Source: Blastocladiella emersonii ATCC 22665 (lineage: Eukaryota > Fungi > Blastocladiomycota). Taken from it: a stretch of DNA of 64,000 nt. Where the stretch lies: NCBI GenBank assembly GCA_025594325.1, contig JANHCV010000001.1, forward strand, positions 3,472,001-3,536,000. Reading direction: 5' to 3'. The notes under the pieces were generated by a model that saw only the letters and a list, made by a program, of their open reading frames with translations, was not told where the DNA came from and did no database searches. The translations under genes and the position numbers were made by a program. The stretch's first letter is position 1; every line of letters starts with the position of its first letter. Of this stretch, positions 1,185 to 63,169 are shown in pieces.

Positions 1185-4003
1185 ATGAATGCAAATGAAC
1201 TGAATCGAGCCGCCGAGAGCGCCGTCGCGGCCGACCTGGCCCGGCTCGACCCGGACCCGAGGGTGGCCCTGCGGATCGCAAACGAGGTCGGCCACGGTCC
1301 CCGTGCCCTTCGTCGGGCTGCAGATGCTGACCCTGGCCCACGTAGCTCTGGAAGGTGATCAATGAGGCTATGCAACGGTCTGCCGTCCATTTCGGTGCGC
1401 TTTAGACGACTCTGGCCGCGCGGACGCGACCCTGACGACCACGCCGTAGAGGGACAGGGACTCGAGGCCGCGTTCGAGCTCGTCAAGCAGACGACGCTAC
1501 TGCGCAAGCGGCTTCTCGAGGCGTACAAGGGTAGGTACGTTGGCCCCGCGCCGAGTCGCGACGTCGTTCGCTGACGCGGGGACTCGGCGGTAGCGCACAT
1601 CCTCGCACAGTTTGAGCAGGTCTACAAGGCCAGCATTCTCCGCCTTCTGTCGCGAACGGTACGACACTGTCTCCGTGCAGCTGCGCTGACCGCAGTCTCA
1701 CTCGCTCGCGGAACGAACAGAATGGGCTCAAGCACGCCATCAACGGCCTGCACGCGCGGCGCACCACGATCCTCGCGTGGTACTCGGCCCTCGGCGCGCC
1801 GGACCGCGACGTGCGCGAGATCCGCGACGTCATTGACGTGCAGCACCTCGACCTGCTATCGCCCGAGATCCGAGCCCGCGCGTGCGCCGCGCTGTACGAG
1901 CTCGACGGGTCCTTCAGCTTCCCGCTCGACGAGGCCGCGCGGGAGGAGGTCCTCACATCTTTGAACCTGCCCATCGCGTCGCTGCTCGCGACTCCCGCGG
2001 CGCCGCACCCGCTGATCGCCATGATGCGCGACCTCGGCCTGTTCGACCTCCTGCGCTCCGACCTAGCCGCTGATCTCGAGCAGCGCGTGACCGCCTTCGC
2101 CACCGACGCGTGCGCGCGCGCCGGCGACATGGACCCGGCGCTCCCCGCGTGTCTCGCCGAGCTGGACGCGCGGTGGTTCCCGCGTTTCGCGTACGCGCTG
2201 CACCTCGACACCGCCGCGGGCGCCGCCGCGCGGACGTACCGCGACCTCGTTGGGATTGCGCTCACCACGGTCCTCGCCGCGCGCACCTCGCGCGTTTTCG
2301 ACCTGGTCGCGCTGCGCCCGGCGTTCGACGGCGTCGTCGCCGACCTGCAGACGTGCCTCGCCGCGCGGCCCAGCGATACCGCGCGCGAGGTCGCCAAGGC
2401 CGCGCGCGTCGCGTTCAAGGCCCGGCTCATGCACCCGGGTGCGATGACGGCGGATCTCGTCGACATGTTCGCGCGCGCGGTGCCCGTGTTCTGCGAGCTC
2501 GCGCCGCGCGACGGGGATGTGCTCCTGCACGCGGCGACGCGCGACCTGCGCGGGTACCTAAGGTCGCGCGCCGACCTCGTGCCGTGTATCCTGCAGCTCC
2601 TGTTCGACGGCGACAACCGCGACGTGATGCTCCGCGGCGGCGCCATCGTGCTCGACTCGGACGAGCGGCGGCGCGTGTTCCCGGTCTCGGGCGACGCGGG
2701 GATCGATCTCGCGGCGCCGTGGACGCCGTTGCCGCTGTTCGAGACCCAGGCCGCGGGTGGAGGAGGGAAGAAGAAGAAGCTCGACACGCTCGCGATCCTC
2801 GTCAACATCTACGGCGCCAAAGACGCGTTCGTCGTCGAGTACCAGAAGCGACTCGCCGCGCAGCTGCTCGACTACGACGCCGAGGAGCCCGTCGATCTCG
2901 CGACGCACGCTGACACGGTCGAGAAGCTCAAGCGCCGGTTCGGTGACCGCCTGCTCGCGCACTGCGAGGGCATGCTGCGCGACGTGCGCGAGAGCGCGCG
3001 GATCGAGGCGCAGATCCGCGAGGACAAGGTCGCGCAGGAGGTACGGCCCCGTCGTGCGCTGCTTCGACGGCGGCAGCTCACTGACGAGACTTGTAGAACC
3101 CGGTGCACGCGACCATCATCTCGCGTGAGCTGTGGCCCGAGATGCGCAGCGACCCGCTGGTCGTGCACCCGGACATGGCCCCGTACGTTCCATCATGCTC
3201 CAGCCCGCGTCCCGTCAACTAACACCCACCTCCCGTGTAGTCACTTTGACGCCATCAACTCGGCATTCCAGTCAACCAAAGCCTCCCGCTCGCTCGTGTT
3301 TCTGGCAGCGCAGGGCCGCGTTGACCTGGAACTCGAGCTCGACAACGGACACGCGCTCGCCGTATCGTGCACGCCGGCGCAGGCCACGGTTCTCGCGTAC
3401 TTCCAGACCGCCGGCGACAACGTGTCGCTCCCCTCGCACACGGCATCGCACCTCGCATCCATCACCAAGCTTCCCGAACCGCGCGCCCGCGCTGCGCTGC
3501 AGTTCTGGGTGCGCAACGGGATCCTCGAGCGCGGCGCGGGGCACACTTACGTGCTGCGCTGTTTCGCAGCGGACGACGATGCTTCGCCCGCATCGACCGC
3601 CGCAGCAGCAGCAGCGACGCCGGCCGCGCAGGCGATGCTGAGCGGGTCCGGGTACCTCGCGCCGCACCCGCACGCGATGCTCGTTGACTCGCCGAGCAGC
3701 CCGACGCCCGCGGGCTCGTCCTCCTCGGGCGCGGGCGGAACAGCCGCGGGAGCGACAGCGGCGGCCGACGACCCGCTGGCGGCGCTGACAGCGGCGCAGG
3801 TGGACCAGCTGCGCCAGTTTGTGCACGTCTCGGTGGCGCACGTGGAGCGGAGCGCGGGCGCGGTGCACACGCGGCTGGCCATGATCATGCACCAGAACAA
3901 GCCGACGCTTGCGGCGGTGCAGGCGGTGCTCGACCGGATGGTCAAGGCGGGCGAGGTCGAGGTGACGACGGACGGGACGTACCGCGCCGTGGCGAGTGGG
4001 TGA
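1185..4003 (+). CDS. APC2: Anaphase-promoting complex subunit 2 (cullin-like), multi-exon; start approximate
   Basis: LDTLAILVNIYGAKDAFVVEYQKRLAAQLL, EKLKRRFGDRLLAHCEGMLRDVRES, WPEM..LVVHPD, SRSLVFLAAQGRVDLELEL, C-terminal winged-helix-like segment; several short introns in 1280-1700 and 3040-3240. Confidence 0.9.
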
Positions 4004-4116
4004 TGGGGTGGGTGAGAACAAAACGGCATTTTTGTATACGTGCGTGCAAGTACGAGTGAGGGTAGAGGCAATGAAGATACTAGGTGAGGTTGGGTGAGGA
4101 GAGGGGTCGGCGGCGC

Positions 4117-5284
4117 TTAGAAGGCTCGTGGGCTCTTGGCGAGGTCGAGGAACTTCTTGGGGTTGCCGCCCGAGACGAGCAGCATGCGGGCCACGTCCTC
4201 GGGCTTGGACATGAGCTTGGTCTCGAGGTACAGGTCAATGAGCTGGCTGGCCTCGGCCGTGGTGTATGGCGGGACGTGCACGAACTCGGCGGTCGGCAGC
4301 TTGGCGAGCTTGGCGCCGGGGTACCGCGGGTTGGTCTTGGACGTGGCGCCGATGACCTTGCCCTCGGCCTAGATGACGAGCGAGATGTGAGCTCGGTAAT
4401 TAATGGGGTCGCAGAAGCGAAGGAGGCGTACCTTGCCCTCGAAGAAGGGCAGGAGCGAGTGGCCGAGCACAAACTGCGAGGCGTGCAGCGGCTCCGACTT
4501 CTGGTTGAAGTAGCGGGTCTTGGAGAAGACGGCGTTGACGTGGTCGACGGCGAGGAGGACGTTGGGGCTAAACGACGCGCGAGCGGTCGATCAGCGTGCG
4601 CCATCAAGCTGCAGCAATATGAGCGACGTACTGCTTGGCCAGCTCCTCGAGGACGGCCTCGGTCACGTCCGAGGACCGCTCGTTGGAGCGGGCGCCGAGC
4701 GTCAGGAGGGCGGAGAGGGGCGAGTTGGCGTCAATCTTCTTCTCGCCGAACGCGTAGGCGGCGGTGATCTTGAGCTCGGCGGCGGACGTCTGGTTGTTGG
4801 AGAGGATCGACTGCAGGAAGGCGGACGAAGCGGTGGGCAGCTCCCACAGCTTCTTGGGGCCCTGGTTGTAGATGTAGCGGCCGTCAAACCACTCGGAGGC
4901 TACGGGCGCGTGGCGGGGCGCAGCGTCAGCGAGCAGGCCAGGTGCGATCCGTGCACTGGAGATGCGGCGCACCATCCTTGACGTGAACAATGACGTTGGC
5001 GTCGTTCTGGCTCTCGACCGAGACGACGTGCTCGAGCGTGCACGTCTTGCCGGCGCCGATGGGGCCGTCTACAGACCCAGCAGCAGCGTCAGGGACCGGT
5101 CCGACATGGCCGCATTGCGGCAGCCGTAGCAGGGGTGACGGATCTCACCAATGATCACGGGCTTCTTGCTGTTGAGGGACTTGAAGACGTGGTCGACAAA
5201 GCCGCGAAGCAGCAGACCGCCGGCCGCGGTGGGCGACTCGATGAAGTTGACGGCGACGCCGCCGGCGACCTTGAGCGCTGACAT
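4117..5284 (-). CDS. RSM23: Mitochondrial ribosomal protein mS29 (DAP3/Rsm23), multi-exon; an additional 5' exon is possible
   Basis: P-loop DGPIGAGKT after intron, VLLAVDHVNAVFSKTRY, VHVPPYTTAEASQLIDLY, LLVSGGNPKKFL. Confidence 0.85.
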
Positions 5285-5561
5285 GGTGGTTGATACGTTG
5301 CAGGGAGTGGTATGTGCGCTCTGCAGAGGCTCAGCGGCGTAAAGGGAAGATCAGCGAGGTGAGGTTAGCGCGAGGCAAGCGGCCAACTCGGCGCTCAACC
5401 ACACGCGTGATGCCGACGGGCGTGGCAGGTCGCCCGCCGACGTGACGACGCGCGCGTTCGCCCTGCCCTGCCACCGACGCGACGCACATTTCGCTGCTCT
5501 CCGCCCGAGTTGCTAAACGCCGCACCTCCTGCTACGGATCAACACTGCCCGCAACGCAACC

Positions 5562-6789
5562 ATGTCGAACATCTTCCAGTCCCTGACCGCCCAGGCGGCC
5601 GCCGGCGCCGCGGCCAAGAAGCGGTACCTCGTCGAGTTCCGCGCCGGTCCGTCGCATCATCTGCGTTGCGCTGCCCGGAACGGTCGATCGCTGACGCGGT
5701 GAGATGCTCGTAGGCAAGATGTCCCGCACGACGGGCAACACGGTCGCGCCCGACACCCGCAAGGGGTACGCCACGGCCTCGTGAGCCTGTCATTACGCGC
5801 CAACGCTGACGAGACACCGTTGCCTGTAGCCTGGTCTTTATGGAGATCGGTGAGGACACGCTCCTCCACTTCTACTGGAAGGGTACGCGCTCCGTGGGGG
5901 TCCCGCTCCGTCAGCAGCGTCGCTGACCGCGACTTTGCGCCGTAGACCGCACGACCAACCGCATCGAGGACGACCTGATCATCTTCCCCGACGAGGCCGA
6001 GTTCGTGCGCGTGACGCAGTCCAACGACCGCGTGTACATGCTCGCGTTCAAGTCGTCGTCGCAGAAGCTCTTCTTCTGGATGCAGGAGCCCAAGGCCGAC
6101 CGCGACGCCGAGTTTGCCGCCACCATCAACCGCGTCATCAACGACCCCTCGTCGGCCGCCGGCGACAGCCCGACCTCGCCCAACAACGAGCAGGCCCAGC
6201 TCATGCAGCTGCTCCAGCAGAGCATGCCCATGTACGCGCGCGTACTCGCTGCTCTCACGCGCCCGTGAGCTCGGCCACTGACTCTTCACCGTGTAGTGGC
6301 GCCAACCCCGCGCGCAGCGCGAGCCCGACCCGCGCCGCGCCTGCTGCCGCGACGGCCACCTCGCCCGCCCCCGCCGGCGGCGCCACGAGCGAGCAGATGG
6401 CGCAGCTGCGCAACCTGCTGGCCGGGATCCAGGTGCCGCAGAGCGAGCCCGACGTGGACCTGACCGCGGTCCTCAACATCGAGAACCTGCGCCCCGTGCT
6501 CGGCGACGCGTCGGCCCGCGCCGCCCTGTTCCCGCACCTCCCCGAGAACGCGCCCCACACCACGGGCGAGCTCGAGGAGACGATCCGGTCGCCCCAGTTC
6601 CGCCAGTCGCTCCAGACCCTCGCCTACGCGCTCCGCTCCGGCCAGCTCGCCACCATCCTCACCTCCATGGGCCTCGACCCCTCGTCGGCCGGCACCGCCT
6701 CGGGCGTCGAGGCGCTGCTCCGCGCCGTCGCCGCCTCCCGCGGCCAGCCCAAGCAGGACGACGAGGACCGCATGGACACGGATTCGTAA
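5562..6789 (+). CDS. RPN13: Proteasome ubiquitin receptor Rpn13/ADRM1, multi-exon
   Basis: PRU domain LVEFRAG|KM..VAPDTRKG|LVFM..LLHFYWK|DRTTNRIEDDLIIFPDEAEF..RVYMLAFKSSSQKLFFWMQEP; C-terminal UCH37-binding domain SPQFRQSLQTLAYALRSGQL. Confidence 0.96.
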
Positions 6790-53516: not shown

Positions 53517-54611
53517 ATCTGTGTGTCGTTGTCGTCGTCGTTTTGTATCCATGAACTAGCCCCCACTTAGCCCCTCCCCAAATCCTTTGTTCCATACTCT
53601 TCCCCTCTGTTTCTCTCAGCCTTCTATAACAATCACGTTGCAACCCACGACTCGCCCATGACCACCAAACTGAATCCTGTCGTCAGTCTGGCTTGGACGG
53701 TGGTCGCGGTCGTGGCCTCGGTGACGCGACGCTTCGCGTGCCCTCATCGTCACCAGATCCGTTTCGCTAGATCCGTTTCGCTAAACACGTAGGATTACTT
53801 CTAATTGGCTCGTGAACCTTGTGAATCGCCATAACGCAAGCGTGCTACGGCCGAACGAGCAGCGGTGTCGATGACCGCGGAAGGACCGTGGCCGTTGCCG
53901 CCGCGCAACGCATCCGTTCGCGTGCTCTGCCGGCTTGATCATCGTCACTTTAGGCGCCAAACCCTGCCCATAATCCACTGCCTTGTGTTTTAGGAGTGGT
54001 GATATGGTGGGTAAATTCACAGGAAAGGCGTACGCCTACCGAACGAGCGGCTATGGTGATGGTCGCGACGACCGCGACCATGGCCATGGCCAGCGCGTGA
54101 CGCGTCGCTTGGCGTAGTTCACTGAGGCAAAAGGTCGTACATGCCAGCGCCTTAGCGATGAACGCTCCCGTTCCAGGTCAATTTATTTACGAAGCAACAG
54201 AGACAGCTTATTTATTCATGAGGCAGGCGGAGGAAGCCCTAGCGAGCGGCATCTGGTGATGCGACGCGTGAGCGGTGACCGTGGCCATCGCGACGCGCCA
54301 TCTGCCGATCGGAAGGCCATGTGAGTGCATCTGCCGTGAGGTGCTGAGGGCGCAAGGTGGAGTTAAACGAAGGGATGCTTAATGAAGCTGAGAAACCTTT
54401 CTCAACAACATCTGGTCACTCACGAAGGGAGAACGACCAGCTATGCATCGCTCGAGCGGAAAAAGAGCGATCACACTCAGGAGTCGACACACAAGTAGAG
54501 TAGGAACAAAGACTATGAACCATTGAGTACAAAGCTCACCAGTAGCAGTGGAGGGAGCAATTCGAGCGAACAAGAAGATGGGCGACTCGATTCGACCGTC
54601 AACCGCTTCGC

Positions 54612-55445
54612 TTAGCAGCAGCCGTGGTTGATGGGCAGGATCGTCACGTCGCAGTCGTTGTTGTTGATGGGCATGATGTGCATGTCGCCGCCGTTGCCGG
54701 TGGTGCTGCAGTCGCCCGAGGGACCCCAGGTGGCGGGGTTGCCGCCAACGAAGCCGTCGGCCGAGTGGTGGCCCTGGAACTGGGTCTGCGACTGCGACTG
54801 CGACTGGAACGCGTCGCCGTGGCCGTTGGACCACTGGCCCTGCGACTGCGACTGGTGCTGCGCGGCGTCGCCGTGGCCGGTGCCCCACTGAGTCTGCGAC
54901 TGCTGCTGGGACTGCGACTGAGCACCGTGACCGCCGAACTGGGCCTGCGACTGCGACTGGGTCTGGTCGACCGAGTGATGGTTGCCCCAGTTGCCCTGGA
55001 ACTGCGACTGGGACTGCTGCTGCGCGGCGTCGCCGTGGTGGTTGCCCCAGTTGCCCTGGAACTGCGACTGCGACTGCGACTGAGCGGCGTCGCCGTGGCC
55101 GTTGCCCCACTGCGACTGGGACTGCGACTGCGACTGCTGCTGGGCACCGTGGCCGTGGCCGAACTGGGTCTGCGACTGGGACTGGGCCTGGTCGACCGAG
55201 TGGTGGCCCTGGAACTGCGACTGCGACTGCGACTGGGACTGCGACTGCACGGCGTCGCCGCCAAACTGGGACTGCGACTGCGACTGCGACTGCGACTGCT
55301 GCTGGGCGCCCGAGCCGTGGCCGAACTGGGTCTGCGACTGCGACTGCGACTGCGACTGAGCGCCGTGGCCGCCAAACTGGGCCTGCGACTGCGACTGCGA
55401 CTGGGTCTGGACGGCGGGGACGTGGATCGGGGCGCAGAAGGTCAT
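54612..55445 (-). CDS. Gln/Ser/Gly/His-rich repeat protein, copy A (277 aa)
   Basis: ATG after CACCAC..AAG leader; MTFCAPIHVP then 12 (QS)n-aromatic-Gly/His units; ends PINHGCC; strong codon bias. Confidence 0.85.
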   Translation of the reverse strand: MTFCAPIHVPAVQTQSQSQSQAQFGGHGAQSQSQSQSQTQFGHGSGAQQQSQSQSQSQSQFGGDAVQSQSQSQSQSQFQGHHSVDQAQSQSQTQFGHGHGAQQQSQSQSQSQWGNGHGDAAQSQSQSQFQGNWGNHHGDAAQQQSQSQFQGNWGNHHSVDQTQSQSQAQFGGHGAQSQSQQQSQTQWGTGHGDAAQHQSQSQGQWSNGHGDAFQSQSQSQTQFQGHHSADGFVGGNPATWGPSGDCSTTGNGGDMHIMPINNNDCDVTILPINHGCC

Positions 55446-55551
55446 CTTGGTGGTGGTGGTGGTGGTGGCAGTGTTGAGGGAGCGAGCGGTGGTCAAGAAA
55501 GCTGCTGAGGGTGCTGATCAAGTGGAAGGGGAAGCCGGGGCACGCCATGTT

Positions 55552-55557
55552 CTTATA
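55552..55557 (-). promoter_or_regulatory. Putative TATA element of copy A
   Basis: TATAAG about 110 nt upstream of ATG; mirror of 60929-60934. Confidence 0.4.
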
Positions 55558-57499
55558 CTTCTTCGCTCGTTCGTTCGCTCACCGACGATTCCGACTCGGA
55601 GTAGAGAGACGCGTCGCTAAAAATTGTCGCTCACCCCCACGAAGCCGTCGCGTCGTTTCAGCAGCGGCCGACCGACCCGTCGAGCTCGACCGCTCACCGC
55701 AAGGCGCGCAGCGGTCCGCGGTTCGGCAGCACCGACCCACACGAGTGGACTCGCTGCGGAAGCGCTGCGGATCACTGCTCGGTGTCGTGTCAAGTTCTTC
55801 AAGCCGCCGCTGCTGACGAACAGCCGAGCTAGAGCAGGTGGATGCCGTTTCCTCTCCATAGCGCAGGATGGCCCTCAGCGTGGTGTGGCGCAGGCGACGG
55901 CCGTGATCCATTCGAGTGCATTGCAGGGAGTAGGCGACTTCATGGTTGCGGGGTTGTGAGGGAGCAAGAGAGGGAGCATCGAGGTCGGTCGCCGCCAGCG
56001 AGAACCGGCCGATCAGCGCGCTGTCTCGCCCCGCTCACGTGTTTGTTCGACGCGTCTCCGCTTCTCGGGTCCGCATCCTTGCGCAGTCGAGACACGAGAC
56101 ACGAGACACGAGACGATCGAGAGAGATAGGAAAGTACGGGATGCAGTCTATTCGCACACACAGTTCACGGGCCAGCCGACGCCGGCGCTCAGTCGCACGC
56201 GTCGACGCATGGTCGCGCCCTCCCGGCCGGGCGAAACGAAACGAGAACCGACGCGTCCCCGCGCTGCTGTACGAGCAAAAGAGTCAAGTCGGAGAGAGGG
56301 GCGGAGCGTGGTGAGAAGGAGGAAGGGGGTCCCGATTAAAGGGAACTGCGACACCGCCGCCACAACGCACTACTCGGGATGCACCAAGGATGGCCGCCCC
56401 ACCGACCCCAAACGCGTCAGACCACGCAGAACACACCGCCCAAGCCGTACAGCACTCGGTGGTGCACACCGACCCTAGCCGGCCAGCAGAAAGGGTCGCA
56501 TACTCGCAGAGGTGCATGCGATTCAGCGGTCCGGCTACTCGCTAGGCGAGGTCACTGCGCGAGACGGGGAATGCAGCACATGCGTCGGAAACCCAGCTGC
56601 AGCGCGGCGCAGGAGACGATGGCGAGCCGAGGAGAGGCAAGGAAACGATGGGTATACGAGGAGGTTCGTAGGATGGACGCGCGCAAGAGGCAGTGAGGCA
56701 GCAGCCGACAGCGAGTGCGGCACACCCCGGATGCACCCGTTTTGCACGCCGCGGGTAGGCTGATACAATGGGTTGGCTTCCCGGACGGGATGCGAGGGAA
56801 ACATCAAGGAGGTGGGTAGTGGGGTGGGGGTGGGGTGGGTCGCGATGCATGAGCCGTACCAGGTGGCGATGGACACGTTACGCGCGCGCGAGCTAGACGA
56901 TGCGCGAGCGAGCGATCGGTTCGACGACGTGTACCAGCCCGCCAATGGTGGGCGAGACGAGCAGCATGTTGAGGTTGTTGATGGTCTTGATCGAGACGCG
57001 GAAGTGTGCGCGGGCGGGAGGCGAACAAGAGTTAGCGAGTAACACTCGGGATGCGGGTCGGAGGTGAGTCGTACCGAGTCCCAAAGTAGACGAAGAGTTG
57101 AGGTGCGCGACGGTCCCACCGCGAGCGCGAGTACTTCTTGAGCCGCGCGGGTACACGTGGCGCTGTTGAAGATTCGGTCGGCCGTGGTGCTCGCGGTGGT
57201 GGTTGGTGCCTCGTATCGGCGACGTGCACCAGAGTCCGACGAGAGGTGGAAGATGTGGTCGCTACACGAGGCAGCGATGTGAGCACGCGATCGGTCGACC
57301 GTGATGCGAGCAGGGCGTACGAGAGGCGAGAAACCCTTGATGATCACCGCAGACCGCCGAGAGCGTCGAGCCACGCGCGACTGTCGCCGATCAAGTGCGC
57401 GAGCGCGTGAAGGCGACTCGGCCGTCGCGTTAATGGCGAGCGAGCTGGCGGACATGGCGATAGTGGTCGAAGGTGTCGTCGAGCTCGGCAGGGCGTGTG

Positions 57500-58140: not shown

Positions 58141-60928
58141 CGAGAGCGTGATCTCGCCGAGCTTGTCGCCGAGCATGTCCGGGCGATCAGGTCGATCCGT
58201 CACGACGGCCACGAACACGCCACGGCGGCCGCGAGCATGATGCGGTGGCCACGATCATGGTGCGGGCGAGACGAGAGAGGAGGAGAGGAGCAAGATGAGG
58301 AAGATCGAGTTCTACACAAGAGTTACGAGCGGGATGACAGGAGGATAACAAACGGGAGTCAGCAACATGCGAGACATCACGCGGGCGGCGCGTGCACGCC
58401 AGGATTGACGTGTGCGTTCTCGTACAAAAATTTGAGCATCATGTTGGGTTTCTACCTGGTGTCAATAATCGTACTGGAATCGGCTTGGATTGTGGAGAGC
58501 GAACGTGTTGCTTACACCACGTGACCAGTTGCTGAGTGCTTTTGACTTCGTCACCGCCTCGCCAGTCGCTGCTCTCTCACGTACCACTGATGTCGAAGAT
58601 GATTATCCTCGAGTCTATGAAACATATGCACAAACACTCCGGGAACTAGCTGCAACGACGTCTCCGCATCTGCTACGCCCGTTTTGACTGTTACCGTTGG
58701 TTGCCATCATCTCGCCTGTGAGCAGCAGCACGGCGCGCTAGACCATGTCAAGCGTAGCGATCTCACCGCTCCAGATGTGCCACCCGTACCCACTCGGCTA
58801 CATCTGGGCCGACTTGCGTGAGCATCGCCACATCACCGACCTGCGTCATCCGCGAGCCACGCGCGTCCCGCCTGCATCGTCTTCATCATGCATGATCCTA
58901 TCATCGTATAGAGAAGGTTTGGAGCAGACAGCGAGTGGGGCGAGACGGGGCAGCCGCGTCAACGAGTTCTGCTTCGCTCTCGGGCTCGTGCGGCTCGGTG
59001 GCCAAGTAGCGCGTGCAACGGCCCGTACTACCCCTTCGGCCACGGAACCGCTGAAGGTCCGGTCGGCATTTTGCTCCATGTGCCTCCGGGCTGGACACTC
59101 CCGCCGTCTGATAACGGCGACCTCGTGTAGAGCGCGAGTCGCGCGGGGACAAACGCGTCGCGCGACGCGGCTCCTGCGGGTGCAACGTGATCGGCGCCCA
59201 CGCCTGTGCTCGATGTGGTCCGCGCTCCGCCGACGATCACCGCTGGTACGCTATCGTTGTCCCCACCCTCGATGCCCGATCCGCGCTCACCGCACATGAC
59301 TACATGCAACAGAACTCGCGCCGTGACGGCTCATGGAACTCGAACGTAATACATGGGAGCAACCCGCTCTGCTTCTCCCCGAACGCGCCACATCTCGCCT
59401 GAGTCGACCGGACCCGCCTTGGGTCTCGTTTTTGGAGCGGTGTACCGATCCCGATCGATCTTCTTCTACGACATGCGTCTGTCCGCGCCAGCGTAAGGCG
59501 GCACCGCCTCCTCGGCCGGGCTCGCACCAGTTGTGCGCCCAACAGCGACGAGTACACCCTTCGTACCGCGTCAGAGGCCCGCCATCTTCCTCGCGTCTAT
59601 GTCAGCGACGCAAGCACGGGCCCAGAGCAACGGTGGCGCTGATCTGGTATCAAGGGCGGTAGAGTGCGAGAAGGGTCCGTTGTCGTCGAACGCGTCGAGG
59701 CCATCTTAACCGGCCTCAAGGCGCTCAGGACGCGCTCACGGACTCTCGGGCTTGTTAACCACTCTTCTCGATCACAAGCCCTGGAAATGTCACAATCCGG
59801 CCATGATACGCACGCTACGAACCTCCTCGTATACCCATCGTTTCCTTGCCTCTCCTCGGCTCGCCATCGTCTCCTGCGCCGCGCTGCAGCTGGGTTTCCG
59901 ACGCATGTGCTGCATTCCCCGTCTCGCGCAGTGACCTCGCCTAGCGAGTAGCCGGACCGCTGAATCGCATGCACCTCTGCGAGTATGCGACCCTTTCTGC
60001 TGGCCGGCTAGGGTCGGTGTGCACCACCGAGTGCTGTACGGCTTGGGCGGTGTGTTCTGCGTGGTCTGACGCGTTTGGGGTCGGTGGGGCGGCCATCCTT
60101 GGTGCATCCCGAGTAGTGCGTTGTGGCGGCGGTGTCGCAGTTCCCTTTAATCGGGACCCCCTTCCTCCTTCTCACCACGCTCCGCCCCTCTCTCCGACTT
60201 GACTCTTTTGCTCGTACAGCAGCGCGGGGACGCGTCGGTTCTCGTTTCGTTTCGCCCGGCCGGGAGGGCGCGACCATGCGTCGACGCGTGCGACTGAGCG
60301 CCGGCGTCGGCTGGCCCGTGAACTGTGTGTGCGAATAGACTGCATCCCGTACTTTCCTATCTCTCTCGATCGTCTCGTGTCTCGTGTCTCGTGTCTCGAC
60401 TGCGCAAGGATGCGGACCCGAGAAGCGGAGACGCGTCGAACAAACACGTGAGCGGGGCGAGACAGCGCGCTGATCGGCCGGTTCTCGCTGGCGGCGACCG
60501 ACCTCGATGCTCCCTCTCTTGCTCCCTCACAACCCCGCAACCATGAAGTCGCCTACTCCCTGCAATGCACTCGAATGGATCACGGCCGTCGCCTGCGCCA
60601 CACCACGCTGAGGGCCATCCTGCGCTATGGAGAGGAAACGGCATCCACCTGCTCTAGCTCGGCTGTTCGTCAGCAGCGGCGGCTTGAAGAACTTGACACG
60701 ACACCGAGCAGTGATCCGCAGCGCTTCCGCAGCGAGTCCACTCGTGTGGGTCGGTGCTGCCGAACCGCGGACCGCTGCGCGCCTTGCGGTGAGCGGTCGA
60801 GCTCGACGGGTCGGTCGGCCGCTGCTGAAACGACGCGACGGCTTCGTGGGGGTGAGCGACAATTTTTAGCGACGCGTCTCTCTACTCCGAGTCGGAATCG
60901 TCGGTGAGCGAACGAACGAGCGAAGAAG

Positions 60929-60934
60929 TATAAG
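60929..60934 (+). promoter_or_regulatory. Putative TATA element of copy B
   Basis: TATAAG about 110 nt upstream of ATG 61041. Confidence 0.4.
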
Positions 60935-61040
60935 AACATGGCGTGCCCCGGCTTCCCCTTCCACTTGATCAGCACCCTCAGCAGCTTTCTTGACCACCGC
61001 TCGCTCCCTCAACACTGCCACCACCACCACCACCACCAAG

Positions 61041-61874
61041 ATGACCTTCTGCGCCCCGATCCACGTCCCCGCCGTCCAGACCCAGTCGCAGTCGCAGTCG
61101 CAGGCCCAGTTTGGCGGCCACGGCGCTCAGTCGCAGTCGCAGTCGCAGTCGCAGACCCAGTTCGGCCACGGCTCGGGCGCCCAGCAGCAGTCGCAGTCGC
61201 AGTCGCAGTCGCAGTCCCAGTTTGGCGGCGACGCCGTGCAGTCGCAGTCCCAGTCGCAGTCGCAGTCGCAGTTCCAGGGCCACCACTCGGTCGACCAGGC
61301 CCAGTCCCAGTCGCAGACCCAGTTCGGCCACGGCCACGGTGCCCAGCAGCAGTCGCAGTCGCAGTCCCAGTCGCAGTGGGGCAACGGCCACGGCGACGCC
61401 GCTCAGTCGCAGTCGCAGTCGCAGTTCCAGGGCAACTGGGGCAACCACCACGGCGACGCCGCGCAGCAGCAGTCCCAGTCGCAGTTCCAGGGCAACTGGG
61501 GCAACCATCACTCGGTCGACCAGACCCAGTCGCAGTCGCAGGCCCAGTTCGGCGGTCACGGTGCTCAGTCGCAGTCCCAGCAGCAGTCGCAGACTCAGTG
61601 GGGCACCGGCCACGGCGACGCCGCGCAGCACCAGTCGCAGTCGCAGGGCCAGTGGTCCAACGGCCACGGCGACGCGTTCCAGTCGCAGTCGCAGTCGCAG
61701 ACCCAGTTCCAGGGCCACCACTCGGCCGACGGCTTCGTTGGCGGCAACCCCGCCACCTGGGGTCCCTCGGGCGACTGCAGCACCACCGGCAACGGCGGCG
61801 ACATGCACATCATGCCCATCAACAACAACGACTGCGACGTGACGATCCTGCCCATCAACCACGGCTGCTGCTAA
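61041..61874 (+). CDS. Gln/Ser/Gly/His-rich repeat protein, copy B (277 aa, identical to copy A)
   Basis: Same translation as 54612-55445. Confidence 0.85.
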   Translation: MTFCAPIHVPAVQTQSQSQSQAQFGGHGAQSQSQSQSQTQFGHGSGAQQQSQSQSQSQSQFGGDAVQSQSQSQSQSQFQGHHSVDQAQSQSQTQFGHGHGAQQQSQSQSQSQWGNGHGDAAQSQSQSQFQGNWGNHHGDAAQQQSQSQFQGNWGNHHSVDQTQSQSQAQFGGHGAQSQSQQQSQTQWGTGHGDAAQHQSQSQGQWSNGHGDAFQSQSQSQTQFQGHHSADGFVGGNPATWGPSGDCSTTGNGGDMHIMPINNNDCDVTILPINHGCC

Positions 61875-63169
61875 GCGAAGCGGTTGACGGTCGAATCGAG
61901 TCGCCCATCTTCTTGTTCGCTCGAATTGCTCCCTCCACTGCTACTGGTGAGCTTTGTACTCAATAGTTTATCGTATTTATCTTCTATCTGCCCCCGTCTC
62001 TTCCTGAATCCTGCCTCCGTTTGATCGACGCGTCGCGCGTGGGTTTCGCACGCAACAGCAGCCGCATGAGTTGCGAATGGGTCAGGCTTCCTGGGTGTGC
62101 GCGCCACGCTGCCTTAATTCCTTCGACCAACATCTCGTCATTCTTTTTGTGCGTTAGGTTTTTATCATTTCGTGCAGTCGGTCGTGATCGCCGCGATTTT
62201 GAGCGGCGCGCGCGATGGCCACGGCCGCGAAATCCTTTTCGCTCAAACAAGATGTGACCCTGTTCCACATGCTCGCTCAGCGTATCGAACACCCACCAGT
62301 TAGTGACGTGCTTAGCGTGAAAACCTTCAAGTTACAGAGGAACTTGAAGTTCGAAGCGATGCGCCGCGCGTTTGCCATGGCCACGGTCGCAGCGCGCCGC
62401 CATCACCAAGGTCGCTTGGTTGGCCGTCGTTCGTCTGCTCAATGAATGAAAGCCTGATCCCGCTGCTGCTCACACATGTTAGTAGTGCTTCGGCACCGTT
62501 TAGCGGTATCGCGCCCAATGGGATGGCGATCGAGCTGGCAAAGAGTGCGAATCGACTCGTTGCGCGATGCGCCACAGTCACCGTCCCACCGCGGCCATCA
62601 CTACCGCTGTTTGCTGGGTTGTGGCTAGCCTGCCTGATGGTGAAAAACCTGCGCATGTTGCTTCTTAGAAGGTTTACAACTATATCAGAGGCGATCCTAC
62701 CGCTTGGCATCAACCCAAGGTCGACCCCGCTTGGCCTCGACAGCAACTACATGCATCAATTTTCTTGCTGCAGAATCGCGCTTAGCCCGCTCGAGGTGAC
62801 TCGTCTCGCTTTCAAGGCCCGGACCTTCGGCCCTGCTTCAGAGGATGCGACATGAAATATGTGCGATCTCATGTTATTGGGCTCCAAGCCCTTCCACAGA
62901 GCCTGGAGTCCTTGGGGGCCTCCCTTGACGCCGTCCTCAAACAGATTTTCCGTCCGGCGATCTCAGAAGCACCTTTTACGACAAGTTACGCATCGTGTAC
63001 AACCAGATCTCATCGCAGGATCGCTCATCCAACAGTCTCGGCTGTGGCCGTTCGCGCGGATCAGCTGAACTGGCCTCACGTGTCTCGAGTCGTCCCTGCA
63101 GCTCCTCATCGTCCGTTCGCTCTATCCACGCGCTCCTTCTGCATCAAGTTCCATGGTGGCGCAGCGCAT

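Follow-up and report, generated by a model that had tools for sequence, protein, structure and literature searches.

QS277, a low-complexity Gln-rich repeat protein of Blastocladiella emersonii with a predicted beta-prone core

Cohesive FG domains combine an uncharged Gln/Ser/Gly composition with regularly spaced aromatic-Gly motifs, and FG domains form hydrogels with inter-chain beta structure. Silk fibroin (GAGAGS), the squid suckerins and the His-rich beak proteins are built from beta blocks joined by Gly/His-rich linkers, the His residues conferring a response to pH. Here we analyse QS277, a protein of Blastocladiella emersonii that can be set beside these systems. Like the block-copolymer proteins, QS277 alternates dipeptide-periodic, putatively beta-forming blocks with Gly/His-rich linkers. 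Like the FG domains of Nup98/Nup100/Nup116 (GLFG), it is uncharged and Gln/Ser/Gly-rich, carries an aromatic-Gly motif every 15–20 residues and has repeats devoid of Lys, Arg and Glu. Like CsgA of curli, it consists of imperfect repeats of ∼18–23 residues with Gln/Ser/Gly/Asn and a predicted Gln ladder. Judged by its sequence, QS277 would belong to the low-complexity, Gln-rich, beta-prone repeat proteins.

Coding sequence, repeat architecture and inverted duplication

The QS277 coding sequence occupies positions 61041..61874 (+ strand, copy 2) of the window, the 64,000-nt stretch of DNA that was analysed as a whole; it is a single exon, stop included, with a 277-aa translation. The NCBI gene calls on assembly GCA_025594325.1 (strain ATCC 22665) contain this 277-aa single-exon gene twice on contig JANHCV010000001.1. 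Translation and a composition count confirmed the absence of Lys, Arg, Glu and Tyr from all 277 residues, as originally predicted, and gave 73 Gln (26.4%), 45 Ser (16%), 39 Gly, 20 His and 19 Ala. With Gln and Asn making up 31% and no Lys, Arg or Glu, QS277 is Q/N-rich and charge-poor in the sense applied to prion-like domains. Its 20 His are accompanied by 12 Asp, and its five Cys are located in the caps. The computed charge is about +7 at pH 5 and about −11 at pH 7 (pI 5.8).

The protein consists of a repeat core between two non-repetitive caps. The N-terminal cap (61041..61076, + strand; residues 1–12) reads MTFCAPIHVPAV and is kept in all paralogues. The core (61077..61730, + strand; residues 13–230) was resolved by a regular expression into exactly 12 (Gln-x)n-Phe/Trp units, with starts spanning residues 13 to 214. 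The C-terminal cap (61731..61871, + strand; residues 231–277, about 47 residues) contains GFVGGNPATWGPS and a doubled [H/T]I[M/L]PIN, and terminates in Cys-Cys. Tandem Repeats Finder describes the doubled HIMPINN / TILPINH as a 36-nt unit present 1.9 times at 61790–61859. The number of units, their aromatic ends, the turns that had been quoted and both caps (FCAPIHVP, here within MTFCAPIHVP, at the N-terminus, the doubled motif and the terminal Cys-Cys) are thus all as the original prediction described them.

Each segment of the core is 9–15 residues long, with Gln at every second position and Phe or Trp as terminator, and is followed by a Gly/His/Asn/Asp turn of 4–11 residues such as GGHG, GNGHGDA, GNHHGDA or QGHHSV(D). 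Segment variation is restricted to the Ser face, the alternate positions being Gln throughout; this invariance is demanded by the regular expression itself, and the real result is that such units tile nearly the whole repeat region. The non-Gln register is filled by Ser (38), Ala (10), Thr (6), Gln (4) and a few others, and the terminal aromatic always falls in this Ser/Ala/Thr register and never in the Gln register. A column-for-column alignment revealed a higher order, the 12 units forming three super-repeats of four (residues 13–85, 86–160 and 161–230), each closed by HHS[VA]D. At the nucleotide level, the word (CAGTCG)3 with at most one mismatch occurs 26 times in the window, always within the two gene copies, against an expectation of 0.01, implying that the repeat pattern is not due to chance. 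Every Ser and Thr of the core (window 61077–61730) precedes a Gln, which gives 38 SQ and 6 TQ sites, formally an extreme SQ/TQ cluster (the ATM/ATR-type kinase consensus) that is probably a by-product of the repeat, though a candidate site of modification.

The original prediction had placed the gene in a palindrome, and self-comparison of the window bears this out; its further suggestion, that the palindrome keeps the dosage of the gene, is speculative. A second copy of the coding sequence (54612..55445, − strand, copy 1) lies head-to-head with the first and is identical to it letter for letter; the two divergent copies sit in a perfect inverted duplication with a left arm at 54508..56671 and a right arm at 59815..61978. 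The arms are 2,164 nt long and separated by a 3,143-nt spacer, and each comprises the coding sequence with 1,226 nt ahead of it and 104 nt past the stop. The boundaries are sharp, arm identity breaking off abruptly at both. About 420 nt outside both arms there is a similar patch of ∼45 nt (GCCATGGCCA.GGTCGC...CCATCACCA) at 62390–62440 and, as reverse complement, at 54050–54100. The genes flanking the inverted duplication encode an ABC-type ATPase and TRM1.

The Gln-Ser frame and its paralogues

Across the repeat, open stretches of at least 265 codons occur in five of the six frames and the longest ORF lies in a frame other than that of QS277, so ORF length is uninformative here. That ORF, the longest starting with ATG, extends from 60938 to 61966 (+ strand, 342 aa) and has a mirror at 54379–55548 (− strand, 389 aa); it is Pro/Val/Ala/Arg-rich, has a GC3 of 0.64 and no conserved counterpart in the paralogues, and could be a trap for gene callers based on ORF length. 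Such frames are what is expected if QS277 is an untranslated, non-functional ORF within an expanded CAGTCG hexanucleotide repeat that lacks stops in most frames. The gene calls sit easily with this reading too, being NCBI models of this assembly, and in the genome paper (PMC9730499) a word search met with neither RNA-seq nor a transcriptome.

Codon composition points the other way. GC3 reaches 0.90–0.96 in the Gln-Ser frame of the family (0.95 in QS277) and only 0.43–0.66 in the other two forward frames; the neighbouring genes, at 0.85–0.95, are in line with the Gln-Ser frame, and the QS277 codons (CAG, TCG, GGC, CAC) are those preferred in the window. A higher-order repeat of 54–225 nt with ordered turns is also unlike a simple microsatellite.

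Conservation among relatives carries the argument further. B. emersonii holds at least six QS277-like genes with four distinct sequences, both window copies included; the further paralogous genes, at least four with three distinct sequences, are P0001, P0002 with its near-identical copy P0010, and P0003. All four diverged sequences keep the ATG, the frame and the N-terminal cap, and three of them the C-terminal cap, in place of which P0001 carries four GG[DN]PxTW repeats. The conserved ATG is found in the Gln-Ser frame only, at a Met-Thr-Phe shared by all family genes, and M1, T2, F3, P6, I7, P10, V12 and Q13 are invariant in the N-terminal cap (alignments A1 and A4). The closely related P0002, P0003 and P0010 share their stop codon as well. 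Non-repetitive caps, start, frame and stop preserved in this way argue against an untranslated repeat, as does the coding sequence being much better conserved than its flanks: P0002 and P0003 are 96% identical over the coding sequence, and 81% and 73% over their 300-nt flanks. They differ by one indel, of 45 nt, and show a pN/pS of ∼0.55, a value drawn from only 18 differences. The identity of the paralogue coding sequences could be owed in part to gene conversion rather than to purifying selection. Taken with the caps and the codon composition, the sequences make it very probable that QS277 and its paralogues are a genuine protein-coding family, and we regard the untranslated repeat as highly improbable.

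Over ∼740 residues of diverged paralogues, Glu, Arg and Tyr do not occur and Lys occurs once, although a single base change would turn CAG into a codon for Lys, Glu or Arg; this near absence suggests that the uncharged core is under selection.

The paralogues differ in their surroundings. P0001 corresponds to the NCBI model H9P43_001837 (428 aa; positions 4001–5955 of locus L003), whose Gln-Ser part covers 5518–5955; the intron of this model ends one base before the conserved ATG (5518) and joins it to an unrelated upstream ORF (4270–5055), so that it is probably a fused gene model. P0002, P0010 and P0003 lie in segmental duplications (L004, L007 and L005, at ∼0.75, 0.82 and 1.72 Mb of JANHCV010000004.1); L004 and L007 are 95% identical across more than 5 kb, and do not differ at all (100% identity) in the 300 nt that precede the Gln-Ser gene. 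These three genes are accompanied by a co-duplicated upstream gene of ∼300 aa, which starts with MSASIVLAAP and has no Pfam match; it was rejected as a conserved partner, being absent near the window copies and P0001.

Members of the family can be described by the pattern MTF[CG](A)PI[HF][VI]P[AT]VQ, followed by (Gln-x)n-F/W units with G/H/N/D turns, H[HNS]SVD, and GG[DN]PxTWxP[SA]. QS277 and its paralogues conform to it (alignments A1 and A4), and a family profile retrieves only them at E<1e-30. The protein had been called unrecognised, and database searches uphold this, no family outside B. emersonii having emerged from Pfam, NCBIfam, PDB or exhaustive HMMER searches. Pfam returned no family for QS277 at E≤10 and likewise none for the paralogues, and scans of NCBIfam and PDB sequences gave compositional noise only; the only curated models to score were the ClfA/ClfB Ser-Asp repeats, with 21–24 bits against cut-offs of 999–1150 bits. 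When the profile was run exhaustively with HMMER against 1.84 billion representatives, four proteins were retrieved at E≤0.001, two of which are the family's own clusters; the remaining two, P0006 and P0007, match through the short GG[DN]PxTWxP motif alone, with His pairs nearby. The family is therefore taxonomically restricted within the libraries searched, and by sequence it was detected only in B. emersonii. Apart from two marine-eukaryote VWA/chitin-binding proteins, a word-index protein search yielded only same-species paralogues; those two were rejected as relatives, QSQSQ low complexity being all they share. ESM Atlas searches with the whole of QS277, the C-terminal repeats of P0001 and P0007 gave no usable match. 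In the literature we found no Gln-rich, amyloid or prion-like protein described from Blastocladiella, and the string QSQSQSQS appeared in unrelated papers only.

In its extended form the motif reads [IVFL][IVFY][GS]G[DN]PxTWxP[ST], usually accompanied by a His pair at a distance of a few residues, and in QS277 it lies at window 61731–61769. It occurs once in QS277, P0002 and P0003 and four times in P0001 (residues ∼345–420). P0007, from a Planctomycetota MAG, has a signal peptide and carries the motif in tandem repeat; P0006, also with tandem motifs, is N-terminally anchored, and its gene shares a compact metagenome contig with genes for XRN, patatin and PAN. The motif could be an undescribed mini-module or a case of convergence.

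P0006 and P0007, sharing this motif and bearing an N-terminal anchor or signal, raise the question of whether QS277 might act outside the cell as a wall, cyst-coat or adhesive matrix protein, getting there by unconventional export or through a missed upstream exon. Its composition resembles that of silk-like or suckerin-like structural proteins as generally known, and in all paralogues an AG dinucleotide lies just ahead of the ATG, as a splice acceptor would. The position of this AG is off by one base in P0001, which makes a shared splice acceptor of constant phase unlikely. A TATAAG box at 60929..60934 (+ strand; mirror copy at 55552–55557, − strand) lies 112 nt upstream of the QS277 ATG, and the same hexamer is found at −103 in P0003; a TATA box ∼100–110 nt upstream of the ATG speaks against a further exon. 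An upstream signal-peptide exon was rejected on these two grounds, the AG without constant phase and the close TATA box. All paralogues, moreover, start at the same conserved Met-Thr-Phe. By inspection QS277 has no hydrophobic N-terminal stretch, no membrane segment and no Arg, and hence neither a classical signal peptide, in agreement with what had been noted from the sequence, nor a mitochondrial presequence; no other family member has a signal peptide either. Export by whatever route thus appears improbable.

Two further elements accompany the genes. QS277, P0002 and P0003 have in common TTGATCA(TC)AGC.CCTC, located ∼40–75 nt before the ATG in a C/A-rich leader (window 60960–61040; ∼5930–6000 in L004/L005), which may mark the transcription start region. 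All three genes also have a word CTTGTA[AC], ∼70–85 nt past the stop, that may signal the 3' end. No heat-shock element was found upstream of QS277 or of any paralogue, and a heat-shock-type inverted gene pair was no longer considered for that reason.

Predicted structure and possible assembly

A structure prediction of the monomer had been proposed as a check on the original prediction of an amyloid-like beta ladder. We ran AlphaFold2 twice, on QS277 and on P0002, with the family alignment as input. Strands were placed on 10 of the 12 units of QS277 and on all six units of P0002, that is, on nearly every unit, at a mean pLDDT of 36.2 and 37.5 and a pTM of 0.27–0.28. At a pLDDT of 36–37 these models establish no fold; they would suit a monomer without order as well as a protein that acquires order only on assembling, and prove neither. 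The beta-ladder claim is thereby borne out in part: the two-faced strand-plus-turn sequence and the strands placed by AlphaFold2 agree with it, while the self-assembly it includes is drawn from composition. With that basis, we tentatively read QS277 as a beta-prone protein of the cytoplasm, one face of which would be a Gln ladder and which may self-assemble, and would not be surprised to see this reading fail.

The main rival is a soluble, intrinsically disordered, hydrophilic protein, similar to cohesive FG domains or to a stress protectant, which would at most enter a liquid or gel condensate through Phe/Trp-Gly stickers. A pLDDT below 40 in both models agrees with it, as do a GRAVY of −1.2 and fifteen F/W-G, F/W-QG or WSN motifs spaced ∼18 residues apart in a Gln/Ser/Gly background free of Lys, Arg and Glu. 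A sticker-spacer polymer, however, has no need of a strict dipeptide periodicity with one invariant face, and FG spacers are irregular; a match to Pfam Nucleoporin_FG is absent, and caps that are conserved and free of repeats hint at a defined structure or a partner. We consider a disordered polymer or protectant not likely in itself, yet to be taken seriously.

The turns lend themselves to another reading, in which QS277 buffers or stores a metal (Zn, Cu, Ni or Cd) through His and Asp and the Gln-Ser segments are mere spacers. The 20 His and 12 Asp cluster in the turns (GNGHGDA, GNHHGDA and GHHSVD, for example), their pairing there is kept in the paralogues, and the QS277 caps hold five Cys. 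The paralogues have only 6–11 His, however, and P0002 and P0003 have no Cys; upstream words resembling metal-response elements are few, with none common to the paralogues, and a spacer role leaves the invariant Gln face unexplained. We give this alternative little credence.

If QS277 is a self-assembling beta-prone protein, its behaviour might be as follows. The absence of a signal peptide and of a membrane segment suggests that it would stay in the cytoplasm. Each (Gln-x)n segment would form a two-faced beta-strand, and strands of the same and of different molecules would stack into an assembly of the cross-beta, beta-arch or beta-meander type, one face offering a hydrogen-bond ladder of Gln side chains and the other a dry interface of Ser/Ala/Thr and aromatic residues. 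All the charge of QS277 (12 Asp, 20 His) is confined to turns and caps, the core being uncharged, which makes it possible that assembly is gated by pH or divalent metals through the His/Asp turns. The paralogues, with a pI of 4.1–4.9 against 5.8 for QS277, imply that a pH gate near 6 is not a property of the family. Twelve in-register Asp, besides, would repel one another unless neutralised, which speaks against assembly. Assembly would yield a material within the cell, solid or gel-like, possibly linked to the non-growing zoospore or sporangial stages. In its most specific form, this reading makes QS277 a Blastocladiella-specific intracellular functional amyloid or beta-solenoid of novel design, with three layers of four long (Gln-x)n strands, an invariant Gln ladder, caps at both ends, a pH or metal switch in the His/Asp turns and a stage-specific solid in the zoospore or sporangium; in so much detail it is doubtful.

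Lipidation or disulfide linkage of the terminal Cys-Cys, which the original prediction had allowed for, did not survive comparison with the paralogues. Their chains end in -GLA or -CLF, without Cys-Cys, and the Cys position of the N-terminal cap is Gly in three of them; since the Cys are not conserved, neither prenylation nor disulfide capping can be the mechanism of the family. Rab-type geranylgeranylation of the C-terminal CC of QS277 was rejected in view of the lack of a GTPase domain (Pfam) and of a terminal CC in the paralogues.

If QS277 is made and assembles, it would be a cross-beta material evolved de novo in a eukaryotic cytoplasm with an unusually clean sequence code, namely an invariant Gln face, a small-residue face, an aromatic terminator and His/Asp turns. 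It would then serve as a convenient natural system in which to study polar-zipper assembly and amyloids gated by pH or metal, and would mark cell structures not yet described in an early-diverging fungus. Should it prove to be no more than a disordered orphan, it would illustrate a common course, in which a hexanucleotide repeat gives rise to a low-complexity gene that segmental duplication then multiplies.

Comparison with known systems

Two bacterial systems offer themselves for comparison. The Ser-Asp region of staphylococcal ClfA/ClfB resembles QS277 as dipeptide-repeat low complexity, a compositional match and not a membership. The QS277 turn Q-[FW]-G-x-[GH]-G-[AD]-A-x-Q is reminiscent of Q-x-G-x-G-N-x-A-x3-Q of curli, a likeness that serves as a lead only; a Pfam scan at E≤10 gave no Curlin_rpt (PF07012) match for QS277. 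Unlike curli, QS277 is eukaryotic, lacks a signal peptide and has an ABC ATPase and TRM1 as neighbours instead of a csgB/csgG-type operon. Its unit is one long (Gln-x)n strand where that of curli is strand-loop-strand, His/Asp take the place of Asn in the turns, and the caps are its own.

The block-copolymer proteins come from animals, are secreted, carry signal peptides and have an Ala/Gly/Tyr chemistry, and no sequence relationship of QS277 to silk, suckerin or beak proteins was detected. Sup35, Rnq1 and other prion-like domains are, like QS277, rich in Gln, Ser and Gly and poor in charge, and cross-beta assembly would be expected in both. Yeast prion domains, however, are aperiodic, Tyr/Asn-rich and joined to a functional domain, whereas QS277 has no Tyr, a period of two residues, and nothing but repeats and short caps.

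Like the FG nucleoporins, QS277 has aromatic-Gly motifs within uncharged polar spacers, a likeness of composition only. In contrast to them, it has neither a Nucleoporin_FG match nor a domain for anchoring to the NPC, its repeats being accompanied only by the 12-aa and 47-aa caps; its spacers are strictly periodic, Trp occurs besides Phe, and the turns are His-rich. QS277 thus falls in neither the curli nor the FG group, since it does not match their profiles and differs in cellular context and repeat grammar. By analogy, its mode of action, if it has one, would be most like that of curli-type/polar-zipper amyloids or of cohesive FG hydrogels.
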